Assembly (NCBI RefSeq): GCF_000143415.4
Contig: NW_003314348.1
Span: 686,062-750,061, forward strand
Direction of reading: 5' to 3'
Length of the DNA: 64,000 nt
Source: Selaginella moellendorffii
Lineage: Eukaryota > Plantae > Lycopodiophyta
The translations under genes were made by a program, and so were the position numbers. Below, one piece after another: positions 1,680 to 46,245 of the stretch. Position 1 is the stretch's first letter; the number at the start of each line of letters is the position of its first letter. The notes beneath the pieces were generated by a model that worked only from the letters and a program-made list of their open reading frames with translations, had not been told where the DNA came from and ran no database searches.

Positions 1680-2300
1680 GATATCAGGGTTATTAACATT
1701 GTTGATTGAATACTAAAAGGATTTTCTTAGCAGAGTGATTTTTCAACTAATGCAGCCAACTTGTTCAAACTCCTTGAGCTCAGCTTGGAAGCATGTTCAA
1801 TCCTCACCTCCACCACCTTAGTCAAAACATCAATAAGATCTAAAGTGCAAATTAATTTATCGAATCAAAGCTTATTGACATTGTTGATTGAATATTGAGT
1901 TGTAGTGGATCCAACATGTTCAATCCTCACCTCCACCACCTTACTCAAATTGTTCCTCACAAAGCCAACTCACCATTCAATTAGGAATGTCAATAAGCCC
2001 TGATTTGATAAATTAATTTGCAATTCTAACATGTTCAATCCCACCCACCAACTTAACATTTAATTAACAATGTCAATAAGCCCTAATTTAGTAAATTAAT
2101 TTGCAATCCCAACATGTTCAATCCTCACCTCCACCATCTTGCTTAAATTTTTCCTCACAACATCAGTAGGATCCATAGCCATTGCAACTCAAATTCAATT
2201 AGCAATATCAATAAGCCCTAATTTAGTACATTAATTTACAATCCCAACATATATAGTCCCACCTCCACCACCTTGTTCAAATCATTTTTCACAACAACAA
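1680..2300. repeat. Degenerate tandem/inverted repeat array, probably a decayed transposon
   Basis: Motif CATGTTCAATCCTCACCTCCACCACC recurs near 1793, 1915, 2030, 2113 and 2250 (last two degenerate). TGCAAATTAATTTATCGAATCAAAGCTTATTGACATT (about 1846-1882) recurs inverted as AATGTCAATAAGCCCTGATTTGATAAATTAATTTGCA (about 1986-2022). The region is AT-rich and CpG-poor. Confidence 0.6.
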
Positions 2301-5059
2301 TAGTCCATAGTCATTACAACAATGCTTTTGGAGGAACTTAGTTAAGTGTATCTCATGAGCCAATAAATTCTTCATCCTCAACAATGGTCTTTAAAATAAC
2401 TTTGGAGTTGTAAAATTCTCACCAATCAATTATACTATTAAACTAATCTTATGATTGGCAACAAGATTATTACTATGCCCCTCTCTTTCAAGGTAAATTG
2501 GCCTGTGTTAGTTTATCAAGTTGTCCCAATAATAGAGTGTGAACTTTGCAGTATTTGTTGAAATCTTTTTAACAACACTACTCACATGACATTAAGGCCT
2601 TTATACACTTCAATTCCTTTTCTCGATCCATCCATTAGTAACTAATTTTCTACCTTGTGAATTGCATAACTTCATTATTAGTTGAATTGTATTAGTTTCA
2701 CGACATTAACCAGGAACTACCCTTGAATGTCAACATAAATCCAAGCTTATCATTTTTGGGAGTTTCTATACAGGGATAGGGACATGCTTGTCCAAATGCT
2801 TTATGCCATGACTTTTCTTATTTTGAGAAGCTAGTGAAGATCTTGGAGGAACAACCACCTAATTTGAAGTTTGAGATAGTTACATTAGCTAAACCATGCA
2901 TTTATCAAAATTGTAATGAAATGGAGAGAACAAATAAACATTTTAAAGAAAAGAGTAAATGTAAAAACAAAAAAAAGGTTTAAGATTATAAAAATTATAA
3001 TAAAACTTAATTTATATCGACATAATTTTCTTAAATAGAATACAAAACAAACCATAGCATAGCAAATTGTTTCTAAACCCTATAAATCACTAAGCAAAAG
3101 ATAAAAGGAGGAGAATAACAATAAGGAGGGATAAATTAGGCCTCACCCCTTTCTTACAGTGATAATGTTTAAATGTTTACAGTGATAGTGTTATTGGAAA
3201 TTTCTTAGGAAAACAAGTGTTTGAGTGTGTGAACTCTAATTATAGTGAGGATTGGAGTGATCTCAATGTAACCCATAGTCAACTGTGGAAACACAATATT
3301 CCTAAACAATTCTTAATAAGGATCTAGTGCTTTGCACTCTCATTATTCATTAGATTCTCACCAAAGTTATTATATGGCAATATGTTATATAACATTTTGT
3401 GGTCTTGTTTTTGGGTAGAATTTCTATTAGGATTGAGATAGTTGGAGGTTGATTTCAAGCCCAATTTGTTCTTTTTCGCTTTTATTGGTCAAGAAATAGC
3501 TTTGTAGTGATTAATCCATGAGAGGAGTAGCTTTGCAGTGGTAGAAAGTATTCACTAAGGTGTATTGTCAAATGGGTTGCAGAGATCTTATCAAAAACAC
3601 ATCACAAACTCTGTTTGTGCCACACATTAGAAACATCCAATATTTCAATATCATTCATTCATTCAAATAGATGTTTATAAAATCACACCACATGCTCATA
3701 CAATTCATACTATAAGTTGTCAATGCACTCCAAGATAGGGAGGTTAGTAGTGATGAATATATACTAGAAAATATTAAAGGCAAAGTTGGTTTTTTTTTTA
3801 CATCCCACAAATAAAACTCTTGTCTTGAAGACCCTAATAACATTCCAACTTGCTCTCTATCACATTATGTTCAGAAGCATTGTCACTCTTAATACATTCA
3901 GACTGTATATGTGTTGAAAATTGCATGGTGGTTGATAGCTTGCAAGTGACTATGCCCCACATATCAAAGTGTGAATGTAGAATCTATATGATACAAACTT
4001 GCAATATGCTACCACATAAAATGTTTAAGTCTTCATAATTACAATGAAATTTACTCATAGTTCATATGCCATAACTCACATTAGTGTAAATCTGTCTTCA
4101 AATTTGAGATAGATGCCTCTATTATAGCTTTGCTAGATCATGCATTGCTAATGCTTTGTGAACTTACTGTTAGCTGAATTTATATTTTATTGTTTGATAA
4201 CTATATTGGAAGTTGATAATACCAGCACTATTTATAGCTATGTTAGTTCATACTTGACTGAATACCTCCTCTGTTGGTACTCTATTATATAGACCCTTCC
4301 AATGCATCTAGACTAGCAAATCCTCTAAAAGTCTTGAATGTTTGAGAAATTAAAAAATTACAGATATGAGTGTGAAATTTCTGATTACAGGCAAAACATT
4401 GTCCTCCACCACTTCTTCCATATTGTGAAACCACTTTCAGAAGCAGAGGACAAAATGTTATTTGCCTCCTCATGTAGTGTTTCACATAGCTATTTGAGTT
4501 TACTCATTGAATTGTACACTAGCAAATCCTCTTGTTTGCCTCTCTGAATGCTTGTCAACACCTTATCTCCATGTTTTTGGACTCAACAACATATGCTCAC
4601 CATATAGTGTGTGCCTTATGTAACCCAAGACCCATCCTAGCATCACGTCTGGCATGACAAAAACTTATGATTCATGGATACCATGAATGCATGTGGCATC
4701 CATGCATAGGTTCTATGACTCATGGTTTCTTATAAAGAGACGTCTGTGTATATATTTCTCTAACATCCAATTAGAAATTAACACAATTTGGTGCAATTTA
4801 CAAATTGCACTTCATATTTAGGAGTATTTTGATGAAAAATTTGGCATTGCCTGTTTGATGTAAGCATATACCCTTCCTTTGCTCTTGATATAATGCTATT
4901 ATCATGGTTAAAATACATGCTCTATCCTTGACAAAAGAAACTAAAGACATTTCCACTGGTGGTGAATATCCCAAGCTTCAGAAGTGAGTAGAATGTCCAA
5001 GAATGTCGGTAGAGTTGTCTGTGTGTCTAGGTTCTTACATTGAGCTTTTTTTTATGCAG

Positions 5060-5187
5060 GTGGTCGGCACTGAGCGAGAAAGCTGGCTCTTTTGGTGTTG
5101 CAGGCAACGACAAAGAAGACGACTGGTCGGAGAGAAAGTGAAAGATCACCAGTCTTATCTGAGAAAAATTTGGAGTGGGCTTTAGGT
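5060..5187 (-). pseudogene. Degenerate duplicate of a JAZ exon fragment
   Basis: GCTGGCTCTTTTGGTGTTG...GAGAAAGTGAAAGATCACCAGTCTTATC...ATTTGGAGTGGGCTTTAG aligns with 6478-6588 of the JAZ gene. Confidence 0.7.
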
Positions 5188-5329
5188 AGGTCGGATTTGT
5201 TACTTAATATCTTTTAGAGACATTTGCGTCCATCGCACTGCTTCTCACAAAGTTCAAGCCTTTGAAGAAGGATCCAGCAGCCACCGCGCCGACGCCAAGA
5301 CTTCACCACCCTGGTCGAGCTTGATCGCG

Positions 5330-5860
5330 CTGCCGGAGGTGAGGAGCATCCACAGCTGCGTCCACGAGAGCGGCTTCCAGCACCACCCTGATGATCGCCT
5401 ACGGCAAATGCGGCACCCTCGAGGACGCGTCCCGGATCTTCCTCCACAGCAGCAGCACCAATCCGCTCAACACCTCCCGCTGGAGCTCGATGATCGCCAC
5501 CTCGGCCAGGCACGGCTGCGCGGCGGAGGCGGTGGCGATCTTCCACCTGATGCAGCAGGAGGGAGCTCGGGCCGACGACGTAACTCTGCTGTGCGTCCTC
5601 GCAGCTTGCAGCCACCGCCAAGGCCGAGTTCGTCGTCTCGATGATCCACGACTACCACGTTGGCCGGACGGCCGCTGCTCTTGAATGGAAGGCTGGAGGA
5701 TACCAAGGAGAGCTCATTCGCAAGATGCCGTTTGAAGCTGCGGCGTCGGTGTGGATGACGCTGCTGGGAGCTTGTAGAACTCAAGGGATCTTCCTCGAGT
5801 AAAGGAGGCCAGTGCCAGGTGTCCGGTATCAACCCCGAGCACGCAGAGTTATATAGTGCT
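5330..5860 (+). pseudogene. PLS-class PPR/E-domain pseudogene fragment
   Basis: AYGKCGTLEDASRIF...WSSMIATSARHG..AEAVAIFHLMQQEG...DDVTLLCVLAACSH, followed in another frame by the E-domain motif MPFEAAASVWMTLLGACRTQG. No 5' portion is present. Confidence 0.8.
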
Positions 5861-24797: not shown

Positions 24798-24920
24798 CAT
24801 CGTAAGCTACTGTCTTCTTTCTCTTTAAAAATTATATTTATCTGTTAGCGACATTAATAAATCCCTCTAGAGATGCTCTTCGTGCAACAACCAAAAACGT
24901 GTGTACATCGGAGTCTAGCT

Positions 24921-26406
24921 ATGGAGGAGAAGAAGCAGCGACCACACTTGCTAGCAGTTCCATTTCCAGCTCTGGGCAACATCAATCCTATGCTTCAACT
25001 GTGTAAGACGCTCGTATCCAATGGATTTTTCATCACTTTCTTGATCTCAAACAAAAGGGAGACTTTTCTAGCTACTGAGCAACAAGCTACTGGTCAGCAT
25101 TTGAGATTTGTCTACTTACCAGATGCTTTCATTCCAGAAGCCTTCTCCGTCACTACGGTTCCGCTCCAGTTTGTTGCTATCTTGGAAAAGAATCTCAAAT
25201 TGGCGGTGCCAGAGATTATTCGAGATATCATGACAGATGATTCTCTGCCTAGAGTGTCTTGCATACTCACCGACTTAGCAATTACTAGCCTTCAAGACGT
25301 CGCTCACCAGTTCGGGATTTGCAAGGTCTCTCTTTCAACATTTTCTGCTTCGTGGCTTAGCATCGAGAATGGTCTTCTTGTGCTTGAGGAAAATGGACTC
25401 CTGCCGCTAAAAGGTACTTTTTAATCTATTCCACTTGAGTTTTTATTATATTTTTTCAGGCACTTCGAGGATCATAGATTTCGTACCCGGCCTCCCTCCA
25501 ATTTCTGGACTGGATTTTCCTTCGCATCTTCAAGAAGTTCACGCCGTAGATCCCGACTTCTCTCTCCGGTATACCAGAAACCAGATCATACGGAGTGATG
25601 CATTGGTGTTTATAAACTCTTTCTACGAGTTGGAAACATCTCAGCTCGACCAACTTGCTAGAGACACTCCACAGTTTGTTCCAATCGGTCCATTGCTTCC
25701 GTCATTTGCATTTGACGGCCAGGTTGGAGTGGACGAACACGAGCAGGAGAGGTGTGGTTTTTGGACGGAAGATATGAGCTGCCTCGACTGGCTGGACCAG
25801 CAGCCATTTAAATCAGTCATCTACGTCTCCTTTGGAAGCCTGGCCAGTGCTTCTCCTGACCAAATCAAGCAACTCTATACAGGACTCGTGCAAAGTGATT
25901 ATCCTTTCCTTTGGGTGATACGACCAGACAACGATGAGCTTCGAAAACTTTTCGATGATCCAAGTTATGACAAATGCAAGTTTGTTTCCTGGGCTCCTCA
26001 ACTCAAGGTAAGCTTCTTCTTTTACCTCTTTTTCTTGCTTAATATGTCGTCCACACAGGTTCTCAAGCATCGTTCCGTGGGTGCGTTTCTCACTCATTGT
26101 GGATGGAATTCTGTTTTGGAGACGATCGTTGCTGGAGTCCCCGTGCTTGGATGGCCTTTCTTGTTCGACCAGCCACTTAACTGTGCGCTCGCTGTGGAGC
26201 ATTGGAAGATTGGCTCTCGCTTGCCACCGGGTCCAGATGCCACGCTCGTTGAAAAGGCAGTGAAGGATATGATGGGAGAAGCGGGCCAAATGTGGAGAGA
26301 CAATGTCACGAAGCTTGCCATCTCCGCGAGAGATGCAGTCTCTGATGGAGGTCTTTCACATCGAAACTTGGAAGCTTTTAAGTGTAAAATGGAGATTGTT
26401 TCATAA
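24921..26406 (+). CDS. UDP-glycosyltransferase (GT1), copy 1, 3 exons
   Basis: PHLLAVPFPALGNINPM, WLDQQPFKSVIYVSFGS and PSPG box WAPQLK|VLKHRSVGAFLTHCGWNSVLETIVAGVPVLGWPFLFDQ. Confidence 0.93.
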
Positions 26407-26454
26407 AACCAGATTTACTTAAACTAAACTGCCGGCAGAAGCTCTAGAGTGGCC

Positions 26455-26725
26455 AGAAAGATTTCCAGCGATCCTGGACCGGAGAAGCGGAAATTCACCG
26501 GCTTTACCTCGCGAAGCCGGCCCAGCCCTGGAATCGACGCGCAAGCTCCCATTCTACCCTAGCCACATTCAAATACAGAGGTTCCTTCGAATATGCGGAT
26601 GCTCTTGATTCCTAGAATATGTTTTTTACATTGGGCCGCTGTTCTTCCTTCTTTGTTTCATCGCTGGTGGGCTTAGCTAGCTCTTCTCCTCATTAGAAAT
26701 GCTTAGTTTGTGGTGTTTCACTGAC
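26455..26725 (-). pseudogene. Orphan copy of exon 1 and upstream region of the ART-like gene
   Basis: Near-identical to about 42862-43200 (AAGATTTCCAGCGATCCTGGACC...CCCATTCTACCCTAGCC...GAGGTTCCTTCGAATATGCGG). Exons 2-4 are absent. Confidence 0.75.
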
Positions 26726-26735
26726 TCCTTTAGTT

Positions 26736-28221
26736 TTATGCCATTTTACACTTAAAAGCTTCCAAGTTTCGATGTGAAAGACCTCCATCAGAGACTGCAT
26801 CTTTCGCGGAGATGGCAAGCTTCGTGACATTGTCCCTCCACATTTGGCCCGCTTCTCCCATCATATCCTTCACTGCCTTTTCAACGAGCGTGGCATCTGG
26901 ACCCGGTGGCAAGCGAGAGCCAATCTTCCAATGCTCCACAGCGAGCGCACAGTTGAGTGGCTGCTCATACAAGAAAGGCCATCCAATCACGGGGACTCCA
27001 GCAACGATCGTCTCCAAAACAGAATTCCATCCACAATGAGTGAGAAACGCACCCACGGAAGGATGCTTGAGAACCTGTGTGGACGACATATTAAGCAAGA
27101 AAAGAGGTAAAAGACGAAGCTTACCTTGAGTTGAGGAGCCCAGGAAACAAACTTGCATTTGTCATAACTCGGATCTTCGAAAAGTTTTCGAAGCTCATCA
27201 TTGTCTGATCGTATCACCCAAAGGAAAGGATAATCACTTTGCACGAGTCCTGAGTAGAGTTGCTTGATATGGTCGGGAGAAGCATTGGCCACGCTTCCAA
27301 AGGAGACGTAGATGACTGATTTGGATGGCTGCTGGTCCAGCCAGTCGAGGCAGCCCATATCTTCAGTCCAAAAACCACACCTCTCCTGCTCGAGTTCGTC
27401 CACTCCAACCTGGCCGTCGAATGCAAATGACGGGAGCAATGGACCGATTGGAACGAACCGTGGATTGTCTCTAGCAAGCTGGTCAAGCTGAGATGTTTCT
27501 AACTCGTGAAAAGAGTTTATAAACACCCATGAGTCATTTTGTATGATCTGGTTCCTGCTATACCGGATAGAGAAGTCGGGATCTAAGGGGTGGACTTCTT
27601 GAATTTGCAAAGTAAAATCCCGTCCAGCAATTGGAGGGAGGCCAGGTACGAAATCAATGATCCTCGAAGTGCCTAAAAATTAATTTAAAGAAAAAATCAA
27701 CTCAGACTGGAATAAAAGAAAAACATACCTTTTAGCGGCAGGAGTCCATTTTCCTTGAGCACAGGAAGACCATTCTGGATGCTAAGCCATGAAGCAGAAA
27801 ATGTTGAAAGAGTCACCTTGCAAATCCCGAACTGGCGAGCGACGTCTTGAAGGCTAGTAATTACTACGTCGGTGAGTATGCAAGACACTCGAGGCAGAGA
27901 AGGATCTGCCATGACATCTTGAATAATTTCTGGCACCGCCAATTTGAGATTTTTCTCCAGAATAGCAGTAAACTCGAGCAGAACCGTAGAGGCGGATATG
28001 ACTCCTGGAAGCAAATTATCGGGTAAGTAGACAAATCGCAAGTGCTGGCCTGTAGCTCGTTGCTCTGTAGCTATAAAATTCTCCCTTTTGTATGAGACCA
28101 AGAAAGTGATGAAAAATCCACTGGATGCGAGCCTCTTACACAATTGAAGCATAGGATTTATGTGGCCTTGAGCTGGGACTGGAACTGCTAGCAAGTGTGG
28201 TCGTTGCTTCATCTCCTCCAT
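26736..28221 (-). CDS. UDP-glycosyltransferase (GT1), copy 2, inverted relative to copy 1
   Basis: PHLLAVPVPAQGHINPM and a PSPG box ending WPFLYEQ. Same intron positions as copy 1. Confidence 0.93.
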
Positions 28222-29124
28222 AGCTAGACTCCGATGGACACACGTTATGCACATAAAACTAAAAAAGATAGTCTTACACGCCTCTAACGATTAGAAGATT
28301 ACTTTGAAAACTAAAACCCTTATTAACAAGAACATTTAAAATTCAGGGGTAGCTGCGCACAGTACCTGTTACTGGCTGTCAACGAGTGAGCATGTGCTCT
28401 GTGACAGAACTGTTCTGGTGGTTAGATGTTCTCAGAATCCTGGCTATAACATTTTTTGATCCAACAGCCACCGATAGTCCGATTAACTTAAAGGTGTTGG
28501 CCTCATAAAGAACTAAGAAAAGATGAAATGAGTACTGAAAATTGTTATACATTGAAATGCATAGTCTATATTCCTATATTTGTTAAGGTTAATAACACTT
28601 TATTAACTATTTTCACATATTCATCATGGCCCGTTAAATAAAACATAATTAATATCCATTACTACATTTGAGAAAAAAAATTCCAATTCATTAGAAATAT
28701 CTTTAAGAACAACAATTGTCTTCTGTGAATGGACCTTAAATTCCATACATAAAAAGGATTTTCGAGATTTCATTAATCTCTTGAGCAACGATCAGAACTT
28801 AAAATACAAAGTGTTCTCCTATCCTTGTTGAGCTCAAACATGAGCCTTGATGAGGTACTGTCATCTCTTAGCATCCCTGTTATGCAGCAAGAGGTATCTT
28901 TCACACCAAGCATCCACGTGTCGTGAATGCCACCATCAATTGAGGTTGCAAGGGGCTCCTTAACTTGCCACAACATTCTAGATTGTGAGTGAAGATTAGC
29001 AACCCACCCATTGATCCTCTGTAGACCAAAGTTCATCAAGCAGCAAGTCCATAGCTTAAAGCCAAGAGGTATGTAGTGATCATCACTTTAGTTTAAGTAA
29101 ATTTGGTTTTATTTCGTCCCAGAT

Positions 29125-31839: not shown

Positions 31840-32175
31840 AGTTTTGGTCAAGCCCAAAACTTTGATATCTTCCTTGTCATGGAAATCGATCCAAAAGTCC
31901 AATTCTTTTTAGTTTTTTGGAGAAATAGAGGAATGCTCACTAAAGAAAAAAGACACAATGGAAAAAATATTACATCTGAGTCTAGAAAAAAAGAAGCTGT
32001 TTATATATACCTTGCTCGGAGATGGATTGTGGCTACTGGCAGTGACGATGTGGCGCATTGGCAGAAATCGTCCAGACATCCCTGTGCTTTTCACTCTGGA
32101 AAGAAGAAAAAAGAGAGTCCATCAAGCTATCGATCACCAAGAACATATCTTACGGGATGAGAGGGAATGGTAAGA
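31840..32175 (-). pseudogene. Orphan copy of the 3' exons of the ART-like gene
   Basis: Matches about 41818-42142 (TTTGGTCAAGCCCAAAA...GGATTGTGGCTACTGGCAGTG...CACTCTGGAAAGAAGAAAA), with small deletions that shift the frame. Confidence 0.75.
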
Positions 32176-33270
32176 TCAGAGATTATTCTAGATGTCATGG
32201 CAGATGATTCTCTGCCTAGAGTGCCTTGCATACTCACCGACGTAGAGCCTTCAAGACATCGCTCGTTCGGGATTTGCAAGGTCTCTCTTTCAGCATTTTC
32301 TGCTTCGTGGCTTAGCATCCAGAATGGTCTTCTTGTGCTCAAGGAAAATGGACTCCTGCCACTAAAAGGTATGCTTTTCTTTTATTCCAGTCTGAGTTGA
32401 TTTTTTCTTTAAATAATTTTTTAGGCACTTCGAGGATCATTGATTTCGTACCCAGCCTCCCTCCAATTGCTGGACGGGATTTTACTTTGCAAATTCAAGA
32501 AGTCCACCCCTTAGATCCCGACTTCTCTATCATGTATAGCAGGAGCCAGATCATACAGACTGACGCATGGGTGTTTATGAACTCTTTCCACGAGTTGGAA
32601 ACACCTCAGCTCGATCAGCTTGCTAGAGACAATCCACGGTTCGTTCCAATCGGCCCATTGCTCCTGTCATTTGCATTCGACGGCCAGGTTGAAGTTGACG
32701 AACTCGAGCAGGAAAGGTGTCGTTTTTGGACGGAAGATATGAGCTCCCTCGACTGGCTGGACGAGCAGCCGTCCAAATCAGTCATCTACGTCTCCTTTGG
32801 AAGCCTGGGTGATATGATCAGACAACGATAAGCTTCGAAAACTTTTCGAAGATCCAAGTTATGACAAATGCAAGTGTGTTTCCTGGGCTCCTCAACTCAA
32901 GGTAAGCTTCTTCTTTTACCTCTTTTTCTTGCTTAATATGTCGTCCACACAGGTTCTCAAGCATCCTTCCGTTGGTTCGTTTCTCACTCATTGTGGATGG
33001 AATTCTCTTTTGGAGGTGATTGGATGGCCTTTTTTGTACGAGCAGCCACTTAACTGTGCGCTTGCTGTGGAGCATTGGAAGATCGGCTCTCGCTTGCCAC
33101 CAAGTCCAGATGCCACGATCGTTGAAAAGGCAGTGAAGGATATGATGGGAGAAGCAGGCCAAATGTGGAGGGACAATGTCACGAAGCTTGCCATCTCTGC
33201 GAAAGATGCAGTCTCTGATGGAGGTCTTTCACATCGAAACTTGGAAGCTTTTACGTGTACAATGGAGTAT
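32176..33270 (+). pseudogene. UGT pseudogene (copy 4), 5'-truncated with internal deletions
   Basis: Begins at EIILDVMADD. A deletion after SFGSLG causes a frameshift, and the PSPG box is shortened (WNSLLEVIGWPF). Confidence 0.85.
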
Positions 33271-39189: not shown

Positions 39190-39469
39190 GCTCCGCACTA
39201 AAACCTCACTCAATATCAACGCTTCTCTTCGTCATACATTTTAAAGCCCGCGAAAAGCCATTCAAAGCGAAGTACCATTCTTCTTTGCAGGCACCGCGAT
39301 CCTAGTCTTCTTTCGGAAGTCCAATTCAAGCGGCGAACCGGCGGCCTCGCCCGGCGCACGCCGTCGCGTTTTTCTGTTTTTCGAAAAAACGAAAAACTCA
39401 CAGATTTGAGATGGATTACTTGTGCACCAATCCCTCTCCCAGGATGCCGTCGTGCATGTTGATGAGCGA

Positions 39470-41768: not shown

Positions 41769-41920
41769 GCTCCGCCCTAAAACCTCAGTCGACAATGCGA
41801 CGAATTATACCAAAAAGCTTTGGTCAAGCCCAAAAACTTCCCAACGTTAGGTCTTGTCACGATCCTAGTCTCTTCCGAAAGTCCAATTCTTTTTAATTTT
41901 TGGCAGAAATTGAGGAATGC

Positions 41921-42956
41921 TCACTAAAGAAAAAAGAAAAAACGGAAAAGTATTACATCGAGTCCACAAAAAAAGAAGCTGTTTATATATACCTTGCTCG
42001 ATGTGAGATGGATTGTGGCTACTGGCAGTGAACGATGTGGCGCATTGGCAGAAATCGTCCAGACATCCCTGTGCTTTTCACTCTGGAAAGAAGAAAAGTG
42101 AGAGTCGATGAAGCTATCGATCAGGATGAGAGGGAATGGTAAGAACGAGAGAGATAGAGTGGAGTCGATCAATCTATGACCAAGAAGAGCTCTTACCGGA
42201 GAGGGTATGAGCACGAGAGAGATTGGAAAGAAGAAGAGAGAGAGAGAGAGTGGAGGCTCGATCAATCTATCACAAGAACGAGAGATCTTACCGGAGAGGG
42301 TATGAGCACGAGGAAGAGAAGTATCTTGGGGACGCCATTGAAGTTGGGCTTTGTGAAGCTTAGGCAGTTATTGACGGAGGTGCTGAAGAAGAACTTGTCG
42401 AGATTTGTGAGCACCAATCCCTCGTGCAGGATGCCATCGATGTTTATCTCGGGCGTGCCGTGGAACATGAATCTGATCAGATCCATCCCTGATCCATGTA
42501 ATAGAAGCGAAAGCAGGAGTGAGAGAGGAAATTTTAGGCAAGAAAGGAAGAAGAAGAGCGTACGATAGGATATTGGATCGATCGAGCGAGGGAACACGCT
42601 ACCTGGACGGTCATCGCCGAAGAGCCTCTGGCACTCGCGGCGGAAGCCAGTGTAGGGCGCGTAATCGGCTTGTTGCAAGCCGGGATTCATCTCCACGGTG
42701 TAGTTGTAGCAGCTGATCATCCAGGAGACCCTGGAGCGCACGAAATCCGGATCAAGGAAGGCCGCGAGCCAGTATCTGTCCTCGGACGCTGCCACATTGT
42801 GAAGCGCTGCCGGTTCTTCCTCCTGGCGAGCAAAGACGGGGCAAAGATCACGAAATTTCGAAAGATTTCCAGCGATCCTGGACCGAAGAAGCGGAAATTC
42901 ACCGGATTTACCTCGCGAAGCCGGCCCAGCCCTGGAATCGACGCGCAAGCCCCCAT
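41921..42956 (-). CDS. Small N-myristoylation-motif PARP/ADP-ribosyltransferase-fold protein (184 aa)
   Basis: Exons 42956-42912, 42822-42603, 42488-42292 and 42082-41993, then a stop at 41923-41921. All introns are GT-AG and in phase. Motifs MGACAS, RFMFHGT..NIDGILHEGL, FFFST...CLSF, KILLFLV and DVWTI...SLPVATI. Confidence 0.7.
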
Positions 42957-43224
42957 TCTACCCTAGCCAAGCTTCTCCGTGAAATTCATTCAAATACAAT
43001 GGAAGGCGCTTAAAACCCAGAGGTTCCTTCGAATATGCGGATGCTCTTGATTCCTAGAATATGCTTTTTACACGGTCTTGACGCCGCCGCCTTTGTTCTT
43101 CCTTCTTTGTTTCATCGCTGCTGGGCTTAGCTGCTCCTCTCGCTCGCGCAGCTCTTCTCCTCACTAGAAATCGCCAGCTTCGAGCTTTGTGGTTTAACTC
43201 TCCTTTAGTTCAAGTAAATTTCCA

Positions 43225-44470
43225 TTTTACACTTAAAAGCTTCGATGTGAAAGACCTCCATCAGCGACTGCATCTTTCGCAGAGATGGCAAGCTTCGTGA
43301 CATTGTCCCTCCACATTTGGCCTGCTTCTCCCATCATATCCTTCACTGCCTTTTCAACGATCGTGGCATCTGGACTCGGTGGCAAGCGAGAGCCGATCTT
43401 CCAATGCTCCACAGCAAGCACACAGTTAAGTGGCTGCTCGTACAAGAAAGGCCATCTAATCACGGAGACTCCAAGCACGAACGATCGTCTCCAAAAAGAG
43501 AATTCCATCCACAATGAGTGAGAAACGCACCCACGGAACGATGCTTGAGAACCTGTGTGGACGACATATTAAGCAAGAAAAAGAGGTAAAAGAAGAAGCT
43601 TACCTTGAGCTGAGAAGCCCAGGAAACAAACTTGCATTTGTCATAACTTGGGTCTTAGAAAAGCTTTCGAAGCTCATTGTTGTCTGATCCTATCACCCAG
43701 GCTTCCAAAGGAGATGTAGATGACTGATTTGGACGGCTGCTCGTCCAACCAGTCGAGGCAGCTCATATCTTCCATCCAAAAACCACACCTCTCCTGCTCG
43801 AGTTCGTACACTCCAACCTGGCCGTCGAATGCAAATGACGGAAGCAATTGACCGATTGGAACAAACTGTGGAGTGTCTCTAGCAAGTTGGTCGAGCTGAG
43901 ATGTTTCCAACTCGTAGAAAGAGTTTATAAACACCAGTATACCGGAGAGTGAAGTTGGGATCTACAGCGTGAACTTCTTGAAGATGCAAAGGAAATTCCC
44001 GTCCAGAAATTGGAGGGAGGCCGGGTACGAAATCTATGATCCTCGAAGGAATAATAAAAACTCAGAGGAATAGATTAAATTACCTTTTAGCGACAGGAGT
44101 CCATTTTCCTTGAGCACAAGAAGACCATTCTGGATGCTAAGCCACGAAGCAGAAAATGTTGAAAGAGTCACCTTGCAAATCAGGAACTGGCGAGCGACGC
44201 CTTGAAGGCTAGTAATTGCCAAGTCGATGCACTCTAGGCAGAGAATCATCTACCATGATATCTCAAATAATCTTGGGCACCGCCAGTTTGAGATTCTTCT
44301 CCAAGATAGCAGCAAACTGGAGTGGAACCGTAGTGACGGAGAAGGCTTCTGGAATGAAGGCATCCTGTAAGTCGACAAATCTCAAGTGCTGACTAGTAGC
44401 TTGTTGCTCAGTAGCTATAAAAGTCTCCCTTTTGTTTGAGATTAAGAAAGTGATGATGAAAAAATCCATA
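43225..44470 (-). pseudogene. UGT pseudogene (copy 5)
   Basis: Frameshifted UGT pieces (NKRETFIATEQQ, FINSFYELETSQL, HWKIGSRLPPSPD) with the start missing. Confidence 0.88.
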
Positions 44471-45122
44471 TAAAATCAAATTTATTCTCCTTTTCAATCT
44501 CAATTGCATTTTTTTCTTGCCATGTCATTGTCAATTAAAGAGTGTGTCATTCAAGACTACTTCCAATATTACCTTTTCATCTTCTAAGGGTAGAAGTATT
44601 AAGTAATATGCTAGTCTATCCATTCTTATATATAAGTAATAAACCCCAAGTAATATATCTATTATCATACCATTCCTATCTACTTTTGGTAAAAAAAATG
44701 GCAATGCAATGTAGTTTTCTTTTTAATAGTGTAATGCTTGCTATGCTTATAAGAGCAATGAAGTTTAGGACTTGAAATTTTCTATCACAATTTTCAAGTA
44801 TATATGAAAAATCTAGCAAGAGCTTAGAGATTATGTTAAGGGATAAGACTCTAGTAGGAAATTATATGGTAGTTCTAATAGTTAGACTGCTTTTCTTACT
44901 TGCACGATACATCTATTGGTTATTATTTAATTAGCAACTTGAAGAACAAATAGTCTTATTTAATTAGCAACTTGAAGAACAAATAGTCTAGCCTTTCTTT
45001 CTAACATATTATTGTCTATTAATACATGAGTTTTTATTTTTCCAGTTGAGTTGGGATCCCTACTAGTAATAATAATATGGGAAGATAGATTTTGTAAAAG
45101 ATGGAGAAAAGATTAAAATCTT

Positions 45123-45560
45123 CATAGATATGGGTTCAAAGAAAAACTAATATAATCTTTATCTACTTTATGAAATCTACTAATATATGCTCAATTTTAC
45201 TAATTACACCCAAAAACATTTGTTGTAAACTACCCCCACCTTTAAAGCTAACACCTTGAATGAAAGTTATTATTATTAACAAAAATATTCTTATATTCAA
45301 GATGTGTGGTTTTTGAATCATATTTGTTTTTATTAAATTTATTATTTAGTGTTTCAAATAATAACATTTCAACATATATTTATATCTTTTTCCCAATCCA
45401 CTTAAACGTTTTTTATTAGTAACTAAAGAGAAATTCAGACAAATATATTCATACTTTGTTCATATGTAAGTTAAATATATATTTGGATGAGCTTACTCAT
45501 ATAATTTGAAATTTATGTGATACAGCTTTAGTCTAGTTAAATTAATTTATTTTTGCCTTA
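45123..45560 (-). pseudogene. Decayed tandem paralog of the AT-rich secreted-protein gene
   Basis: Minus-strand remnants in the same order as 45789-46245: ETLNNKFNKNKYDSKT, QGVSFKGGGS, N*AYISRFHKVDKDYISF and LNPYL. Stops and frameshifts are present. Confidence 0.7.
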
Positions 45561-45788
45561 TAAGTAAATATAAGGCAAAAAATGTATGTGCTTAGGATAA
45601 AACTTTTACTGTAAATTTATTTTTCTTTTGATTTATTTTAACTCATTTAAAAATAAATTTGACTACTTACTTTATAAACTTATAATGGAAAGTGCATTAT
45701 CAGTTAAGGTTTTCTAAAACAAATTAAAAATTATAATTATGTATTTGACACTAGAACTCACTAGTTTTATTTTTAAAGTAGACTATTA

Positions 45789-46245
45789 TTATTTCCATGG
45801 ATATGGATTTAAATCTAGATTATCAAAAATAATATACCCATTATTTATTCTATGTGTTCTACCAGTATATGCCCAATTTTGCCAACCATACCATGAACCT
45901 TTTGTTATAAATTCTCCTTCACCTCTGAATATTACACCTTGAAATTTAATAGAGTTAATTAAAATATCTTGACATTCTTGGTACGTTTTTCTATCATAAT
46001 ATTTTTTATCAAATTGATCATTTAATGTTTCTCTCCAAATAATAGAATTTCCATATAAATTACAGCTATTTAAAGCATTTAGCATATCTGGTTTCCAATT
46101 AACTAAAAACAAAATTACTACAAATGAAAAAAAAATCAAATATATACATACTTGGTTTACTTGTTAAGTTGAATAAATTTGCTGATGAGCTTACTAATAT
46201 AATTTTAATTAAAAGAATAAAAATAATTACTAATTTAGTTGCCAT
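45789..46245 (-). CDS. Small secreted protein of unknown function in an AT-rich island (2 exons, about 135 aa)
   Basis: Exon 1 (46245-46152) is signal-peptide-like: MATKLVIIFILLIKIILVSSSA. A 49-nt GT-AG intron (46151-46103) joins it in frame to ORF 45789-46139, ending FRGEGEFITKGSWYGWQNWAYTGRTHRINNGYIIFDNLDLNPYPWK. Confidence 0.7.

Follow-up and report, generated by a model that had tools for sequence, protein, structure and literature searches.

Two questions are raised by a short, intron-rich locus of Selaginella moellendorffii: whether it is a gene at all and, if so, whether its product belongs to the ADP-ribosyltransferase (ART) superfamily. Plant ADP-ribosylation is defined by the PARP1-3 and SRO/RCD1 families, and a small protein outside both would widen that picture. 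The candidate occupies positions 42956-41921 on the minus strand of the window (the whole stretch of 64,000 nucleotides that was analysed), with a UGT remnant on one side and a TraB gene on the other. The original prediction, made from the DNA letters, proposed a hidden gene here, encoding a membrane-anchored protein of 184 aa with an ART fold. Here, we examine its exons, its transcripts, its allele in the second haplotype and the relationships of the encoded protein.

Gene structure and coding signal

The proposed structure consists of four in-phase GT-AG exons, with a final acceptor placed straight onto TGA. It was recovered in full when all boundaries were re-derived: the phases fit, the parts add up (15+73+1+65+30 = 184 aa) and every peptide string originally quoted is present in the new translation. 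Exon 1 (42912-42956) comprises the ATG and 14 further codons, ends in phase 0 with a donor GT at 42911, and begins MGACAS, an MGxxxS-type N-terminus with Cys at position 4; its ATG lies in a good context (A at -3, G at +4), with an in-frame TAG 9 nt upstream. The predicted intron 1 (42823-42911; 89 nt, GT..AG) leads to exon 2 (42603-42822; 73 codons and one base), intron 2 (42489-42602) and exon 3 (42292-42488; two bases and 65 codons), all on the minus strand. Intron 3 (42083-42291) measures 209 nt here and 228 nt in the other haplotype. About 95 nt are duplicated in tandem within it (42123-42222 and 42210-42317), so that the final 28 nt of exon 3 occur a second time together with the donor. 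The predicted exon 4 (41993-42082) adds 30 codons on the same strand. Beyond it, the original model places an optional, predicted intron (41992-41924; 69 nt, GT..AG) ahead of the TGA (41923-41921); the alternative is unspliced read-through to a TAG at 41924-41926. The stretch 41921-41992 is probably non-coding, because a 1-nt indel makes the read-through tails of the two haplotypes differ. No convincing transposon-type terminal inverted repeats were found flanking the gene.

Exon 2, intron 2 and exon 3 together form one open frame of 228 codons, within which the coding signal is unevenly distributed. A codon model trained on the PPR and UGT genes of the window (log-odds per codon) gave in-frame values of +0.26 for exon 2 (GC3 0.75) and +0.48 for exon 3 (GC3 0.77), the strongest of the exons, with the other two frames negative in both. 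Intron 2 scored +0.03 (GC3 0.50), while exon 1 (-0.05) and exon 4 (-0.08; GC3 0.50) carry no codon signal. Intron 2, at 114 nt, is in frame and stop-free in both haplotypes, and intron 3 without its 95-nt duplication is also 114 nt long and open in the frame of exon 4; both are CT-rich, which may suffice to explain their openness.

Transcription and splicing

Four RNA data sets were available: three stranded RNA-seq runs (about 9.2 million reads sampled from each) and a fourth set, X1, in the form of contigs. The TraB contig of X1 is spliced as well, which shows this set to be RNA. A 161-nt contig of X1, with zero mismatches to this haplotype, joins 42487 to 42602 and so skips exactly the 114 nt of intron 2 (CT..AC on the plus strand), confirming removal of that intron; exon 2 is covered by X1 contig 6. 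In the three RNA-seq runs the candidate has a depth of zero, apart from one or two reads of X9 on exon 1, and these continue into intron 1 (bins 42820-42961, depth 0.9-1.5). In the same runs the first exon of TraB, just downstream, is covered 50-97x. The four introns that had been predicted are thus matched by a transcript junction at intron 2 and nowhere else: the RNA data hold no junction reads for intron 1, intron 3 or the last intron, and no transcript support for exon 4. One further X1 contig (contig 5, 41922-42085) was considered as a transcript retaining the last intron and was rejected; it carries 6 mismatches and 2 insertions, which identify it as the other-haplotype allele of a partial gene copy at 32 kb (below), and is therefore uninformative here.

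The gene is real with high confidence as regards exons 2 and 3, which are coding and spliced. Confidence is lower for exons 1 and 4, whose use is predicted. The RNA data are best explained if the candidate is transcribed weakly, or under some conditions only.

The allele in the second haplotype

A second-haplotype allele lies at 4473-5526 of scaffold GL377684.1 (L003). It has four exons of equal length and keeps all eight splice dinucleotides and the TGA. Exon 1 is identical between the haplotypes, exon 2 has two synonymous and two non-synonymous differences, and exon 4 has none in 90 nt, while intron 2 differs at 4 of 114 positions. Overall, substitutions affect 6/552 exonic nucleotides vs 22/811 elsewhere (Fisher p=0.05), and gap columns number 0 in the exons vs 58 in introns or flanks. 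Among the indels, a net 19 nt in intron 3 and a single nucleotide in the last intron would each disrupt the frame of a colinear reading. The exonic differences divide into three synonymous and three non-synonymous (pN/pS 0.30, p=0.13), and these statistics rest on those six substitutions. Small as the numbers are, they show the pattern that the proposed exons and introns should leave if mildly constrained.

Annotation and the TraB neighbour

In the second haplotype, nothing is annotated over the locus, and there the description of the gene as hidden holds. In this haplotype it does not, as GenBank has an 825-aa TraB_PrgY_gumN model (window 42956-37640; L001 4614-9930) that starts at the very ATG of the prediction and spans both TraB paralogues of the window. 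Could the candidate exons then form the 5' end of the adjacent TraB gene? The annotation says so over its full span, and an in-frame, phase-0 acceptor at 41783, just ahead of the TraB ATG, makes such a fusion possible on paper. However, TraB RNA coverage starts near 41830 and falls from its high level to a depth of 0 further upstream, with no joint linking it to the candidate. The other haplotype, moreover, has two separate TraB proteins of 389 and 219 aa (L003 5717-7307 and 8997-9957), neither of which extends over the candidate; the 389-aa protein starts at the position equivalent to window 41768. The 825-aa model also merges the two TraB paralogues with one another. Because of the separate models and the unjoined RNA, we regard it as a fusion artefact composed of the candidate's start codon and two tandem TraB paralogues, and consider it very improbable that the candidate exons belong to TraB. 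RNA depth supports a TraB start near 41800-41830.

Partial copies and history of the locus

Pieces of the candidate recur elsewhere in the window, all on the minus strand. One partial copy (26456-26827) holds the 3' end of a UGT, exon 1 (26552-26508) and 55 nt of intron 1. Another (31890-32182) holds exon 4 and its flanks, with deletions of 1 and 4 nt; the other haplotype carries an intact allele of this copy, from which X1 contig 5 derives. The third is a 32-nt remnant of an exon-3 paralogue (39421-39452), found directly upstream of the second TraB copy, where it abuts fragments of a PPR gene; in the other haplotype this remnant extends over 70 nt, and its translation is still FMFHG..NIDGIL.EGLV, followed by a stop. 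Since gene pieces recur in this way, including an exon-3 remnant beside the second TraB gene, the candidate-TraB block must have been duplicated in tandem, after which one candidate copy decayed. The gene, with its motif-bearing exon, is older than this duplication.

The neighbourhood of the exon-3 remnant is a mosaic. Between 39350 and 39750, fragments of PPR2 occur in both orientations (39750-39624, 39562-39506 inverted, 39486-39451) and are joined directly to the remnant. An origin of exon 3 from a PPR gene was ruled out, as PPR2 homology stops at 39451 and the exon-3-like piece begins at 39452; neither PPR gene, moreover, is significantly similar to exon 3. The product of a neighbouring single-exon PPR gene matches a protein of GenBank scaffold GL377652.1 (GCA_000143415.2) with full identity, and its 90% cluster includes XP_002991443.2 of Selaginella moellendorffii.

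Several other features of the region were observed. In the other haplotype, exon 4 of the fragment copy (window 31890-32182; L003 14985-15215) agrees with that of the candidate at 90/90 positions, against a difference of about 9% in the flanks; the other-haplotype copy (L003 14985-15215) is transcribed in X1 (contig 5, depth 3.5). UGT genes and fragments are clustered in convergent and tandem arrangement at 24873-28254 and 32397-33200, with short fragment copies scattered among them. The truncated UGT beside the candidate (annotated as 252 aa, 43233-44249) has RNA reads over its 3' exon (43246-43458) that carry 4-5 mismatches each; paralogous UGTs are the probable source of these reads, and the truncated copy itself may be silent. 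AT-rich islands lie at 2001-4000 (GC 0.32) and 44001-46000 (GC 0.29), against a GC of 0.41-0.58 in the rest of the window.

Homologue and family searches

Searches for relatives of the whole protein returned little. A word-indexed protein search with the 228-aa open reading frame gave no match (no protein of 125-399 aa scored), and phmmer with the translation of exon 2, intron 2 and exon 3 found no homologue among 1.84 billion representative proteins; its only match, a repetitive protein, is spurious because it aligns to the intron translation. Neither the PADLOC defence models nor Rfam gave anything at the locus.

Exon 3 is the exception. Its residues 5-40 (approximately 42367-42474) contain a stretch of the form h-h-H-G-T...I...G-L that is assigned, weakly, to the ART superfamily by three profile or sequence libraries and by a language model. 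The PARP profile of Pfam (PF00644) matches residues 6-25 at profile positions 51-70 of 199 (E=0.038); the score of 13.9 bits lies under the gathering cut-off of 26.7 and does not confer membership. The KptA/Tpt1 model of NCBIfam (NF002013) matches residues 5-40, ungapped, at positions 96-131 of 183 (E=0.043), and here too the 13.3 bits fall short of the curated cut-off (231 bits) for the family. PF01885, the Pfam counterpart of this family, was absent from the Pfam search at E<=10. Tpt1 is also the best match in the PDB (E=0.08), followed by PARP4 (E=0.8). The only named families among the language-model neighbours of exon 3 are PARP (0.85), rifampin ART Arr (0.85) and Tox-ART-HYD1 (0.83); all are ART-fold, and all lie below the level of 0.9 that makes a neighbour more than a lead.

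These signals must be read with care. All ART matches of exon 3 are sub-threshold, at 13-17 bits, and the four signals are not independent because they rest on the same 20-36 residues. Control open reading frames of the same region gave unrelated Pfam matches at E=0.026-0.087, which is noise of similar E-value. In favour of the ART reading, the motif pattern, written after the motif was seen, is expected 0.03 times per shuffled window. Exons 2 and 4 gave no ART signal in family, profile or language-model searches; the nearest language-model neighbours of exon 2 are sulfotransferase fragments, at low recognition. AlphaFold2 without an alignment, run on the unspliced translation of exon 2, intron 2 and exon 3, was uninformative (pLDDT 39.2, pTM 0.24). 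The proposed ordered series of ART motifs survives, at sub-threshold strength, in its exon 3 portion; 'LLCRV' and 'EYVV..ILP', put forward as further motif equivalents, were recognised by no tool, as exons 2 and 4 give no ART signal.

Comparison with known ADP-ribosyltransferases

The family most similar to the candidate in overall layout is the RNA 2'-phosphotransferase Tpt1/KptA (NF002013, PF01885), a member of the ART superfamily and the best match of exon 3 in both the PDB and NCBIfam. HGT lies at residues 98-100 of the 184-aa model and at about position 100 of 183 in the KptA profile, and the match is flanked by 93 and 55 residues in the model vs 95 and 52 profile positions. The two are thus colinear to within 2-3 residues at both ends, a correspondence that rests on the predicted exons 1 and 4; given these exons, the model has the layout of a Tpt1-type protein (two-lobed, about 180 aa, HGT near residue 100). 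Both have the HGT motif and, after it, a helix that ends in G-L. Differences are nonetheless substantial. The N-terminal lobe of Tpt1/KptA is not recognisable in the candidate, and the second His, in a VHLS-type strand, is replaced by Phe. The catalytic tetrad of Tpt1/KptA is Arg-His-Arg-Arg. This tetrad cannot be located in the candidate: exon 3 has no Arg in the stretch after FFFS, and the N-terminal lobe gave no alignment. Tpt1 also lacks a lipidation-type N-terminus, whereas one is predicted for the candidate.

The PARP catalytic domain (PF00644), including that of plant PARP1-3, aligns to the candidate through the stretch FMFHGT...I..I...GL (profile 51-70). The loop from the His to the aromatic residue is about 10 residues shorter in the candidate, and about 70 residues follow the match vs 129 profile positions, a shortfall of about 60 that does not fit a complete PARP catalytic domain. 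Canonical PARPs carry an H-Y-E (or H-Y-x) triad on three strands of a domain of about 200 residues; in the candidate the His is present, the Tyr is replaced by Phe, and the Glu-bearing strand is unaligned, recognised by no tool. Regulatory, WGR, BRCT and zinc-finger domains are absent. The absence of WWE, RST, BRCT and zinc-finger domains had been correctly foreseen, as Pfam found none of them in any exon or open reading frame, its only weak match being to PARP. If the protein is ART-derived, its size and spacing would place it nearer to Tpt1/KptA than to PARP, because the KptA match is ungapped over 36 residues with near-equal flanks.

The SRO/RCD1 proteins of plants also have a PARP-like core, and it is disputed whether they are catalytically active in the canonical sense (for example, PMC2848248 and PMC9614482). 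An RST domain forms their C-terminal part, and many have a WWE domain at the N-terminus (PMC2848248). The candidate has neither domain beside its putative core by Pfam, and no similarity to any SRO was scored by phmmer among the 1.84 billion representatives, which sets it apart from this family.

Of the catalytic residues, only the motif His is retained. Phe takes the place of the second His or the Tyr that would contact nicotinamide, and alignment places neither an acidic nor an Arg catalytic residue. With this replacement, and with neither the Glu of PARP nor the Arg tetrad of Tpt1 placeable, an ART-like product would more probably be an NAD-binding protein or inactive scaffold than an active transferase. 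At the N-terminus, MGACAS fits the pattern for myristoylation and S-acylation (Met-Gly, Ser at 6 and a nearby Cys), and could tether the protein to a membrane, provided that exon 1 is spliced to exon 2 as predicted; the reads over exon 1 retain intron 1.

Weighing the explanations

The best explanation as a whole, to which we give a probability of roughly 0.5, is an orphan gene whose exon 3 is of ART ancestry with Tpt1/KptA-like spacing. The locus would then be a genuine small gene of Selaginella moellendorffii, stand-alone and lineage-restricted, and exon 3 would most likely descend from the NAD-binding beta-alpha-beta core of the ART superfamily; ART ancestry of this exon, taken by itself, stands at about even odds. 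A tentative alternative, which we hold possible though doubtful, is that the gene is an orphan, young or slowly decaying, with an unrelated or undefined fold and a short motif that resembles ARTs by chance. The sub-threshold scores, the equally good noise from control reading frames, the want of any homologue among 1.84 billion representatives and the unrecognised exons 2 and 4 would all be expected of such a gene, as would its very low expression and a neighbourhood full of gene fragments and mosaics. The locus was, in addition, picked from thousands of windows, and a pattern expected 0.03 times per window will occur somewhere by chance. A chance motif accounts less well, however, for the agreement of the top matches of three libraries and of every set of named language-model neighbours on one superfamily, or for an ungapped match over 36 residues that reaches the second motif (FFFS against the strand of the profile). 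Of all the exons, moreover, the one with the motif has the strongest coding signal, and the motif was already present in the older paralogue remnant.

The full form of the original prediction goes further than an orphan gene of ART ancestry, to an active, myristoylated and palmitoylated minimal mono-ADP-ribosyltransferase or NADase at the membrane, possibly in defence. The MGxCxS start with its well-placed ATG, the retained His of the HGT motif and the intact state of both haplotypes are in keeping with it. Activity is nevertheless hard to reconcile with Phe at both aromatic-hydroxyl positions, with no alignable Glu or Arg catalytic residue and with the loss of some 60 residues of the PARP domain after the motif; the junction of exons 1 and 2 is unseen, the only reads there keep intron 1, and expression is absent in three deep libraries. 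We consider such an enzyme quite unlikely. A private, lipid-anchored ART-fold protein of about 184 aa, of Tpt1/KptA-like size and with an H-F-F variant of the site, that binds or consumes NAD+ at the membrane is likewise improbable as a complete description; to our knowledge, such a lipid-anchored minimal architecture has been described for no plant ART.

Implications

As it stands, the finding is mainly a point of annotation: an intact, spliced orphan gene has been left unannotated in one haplotype and mis-fused in the other. A single HGT-type motif is insufficient for calling an ART, and the claimed membrane-anchored enzyme is best treated as a lead. If the ART ancestry of exon 3 is true, Selaginella would hold a very divergent, minimal and possibly membrane-tethered NAD-using member of the ART superfamily, in an early vascular plant and outside the PARP1-3 and SRO/RCD1 families.
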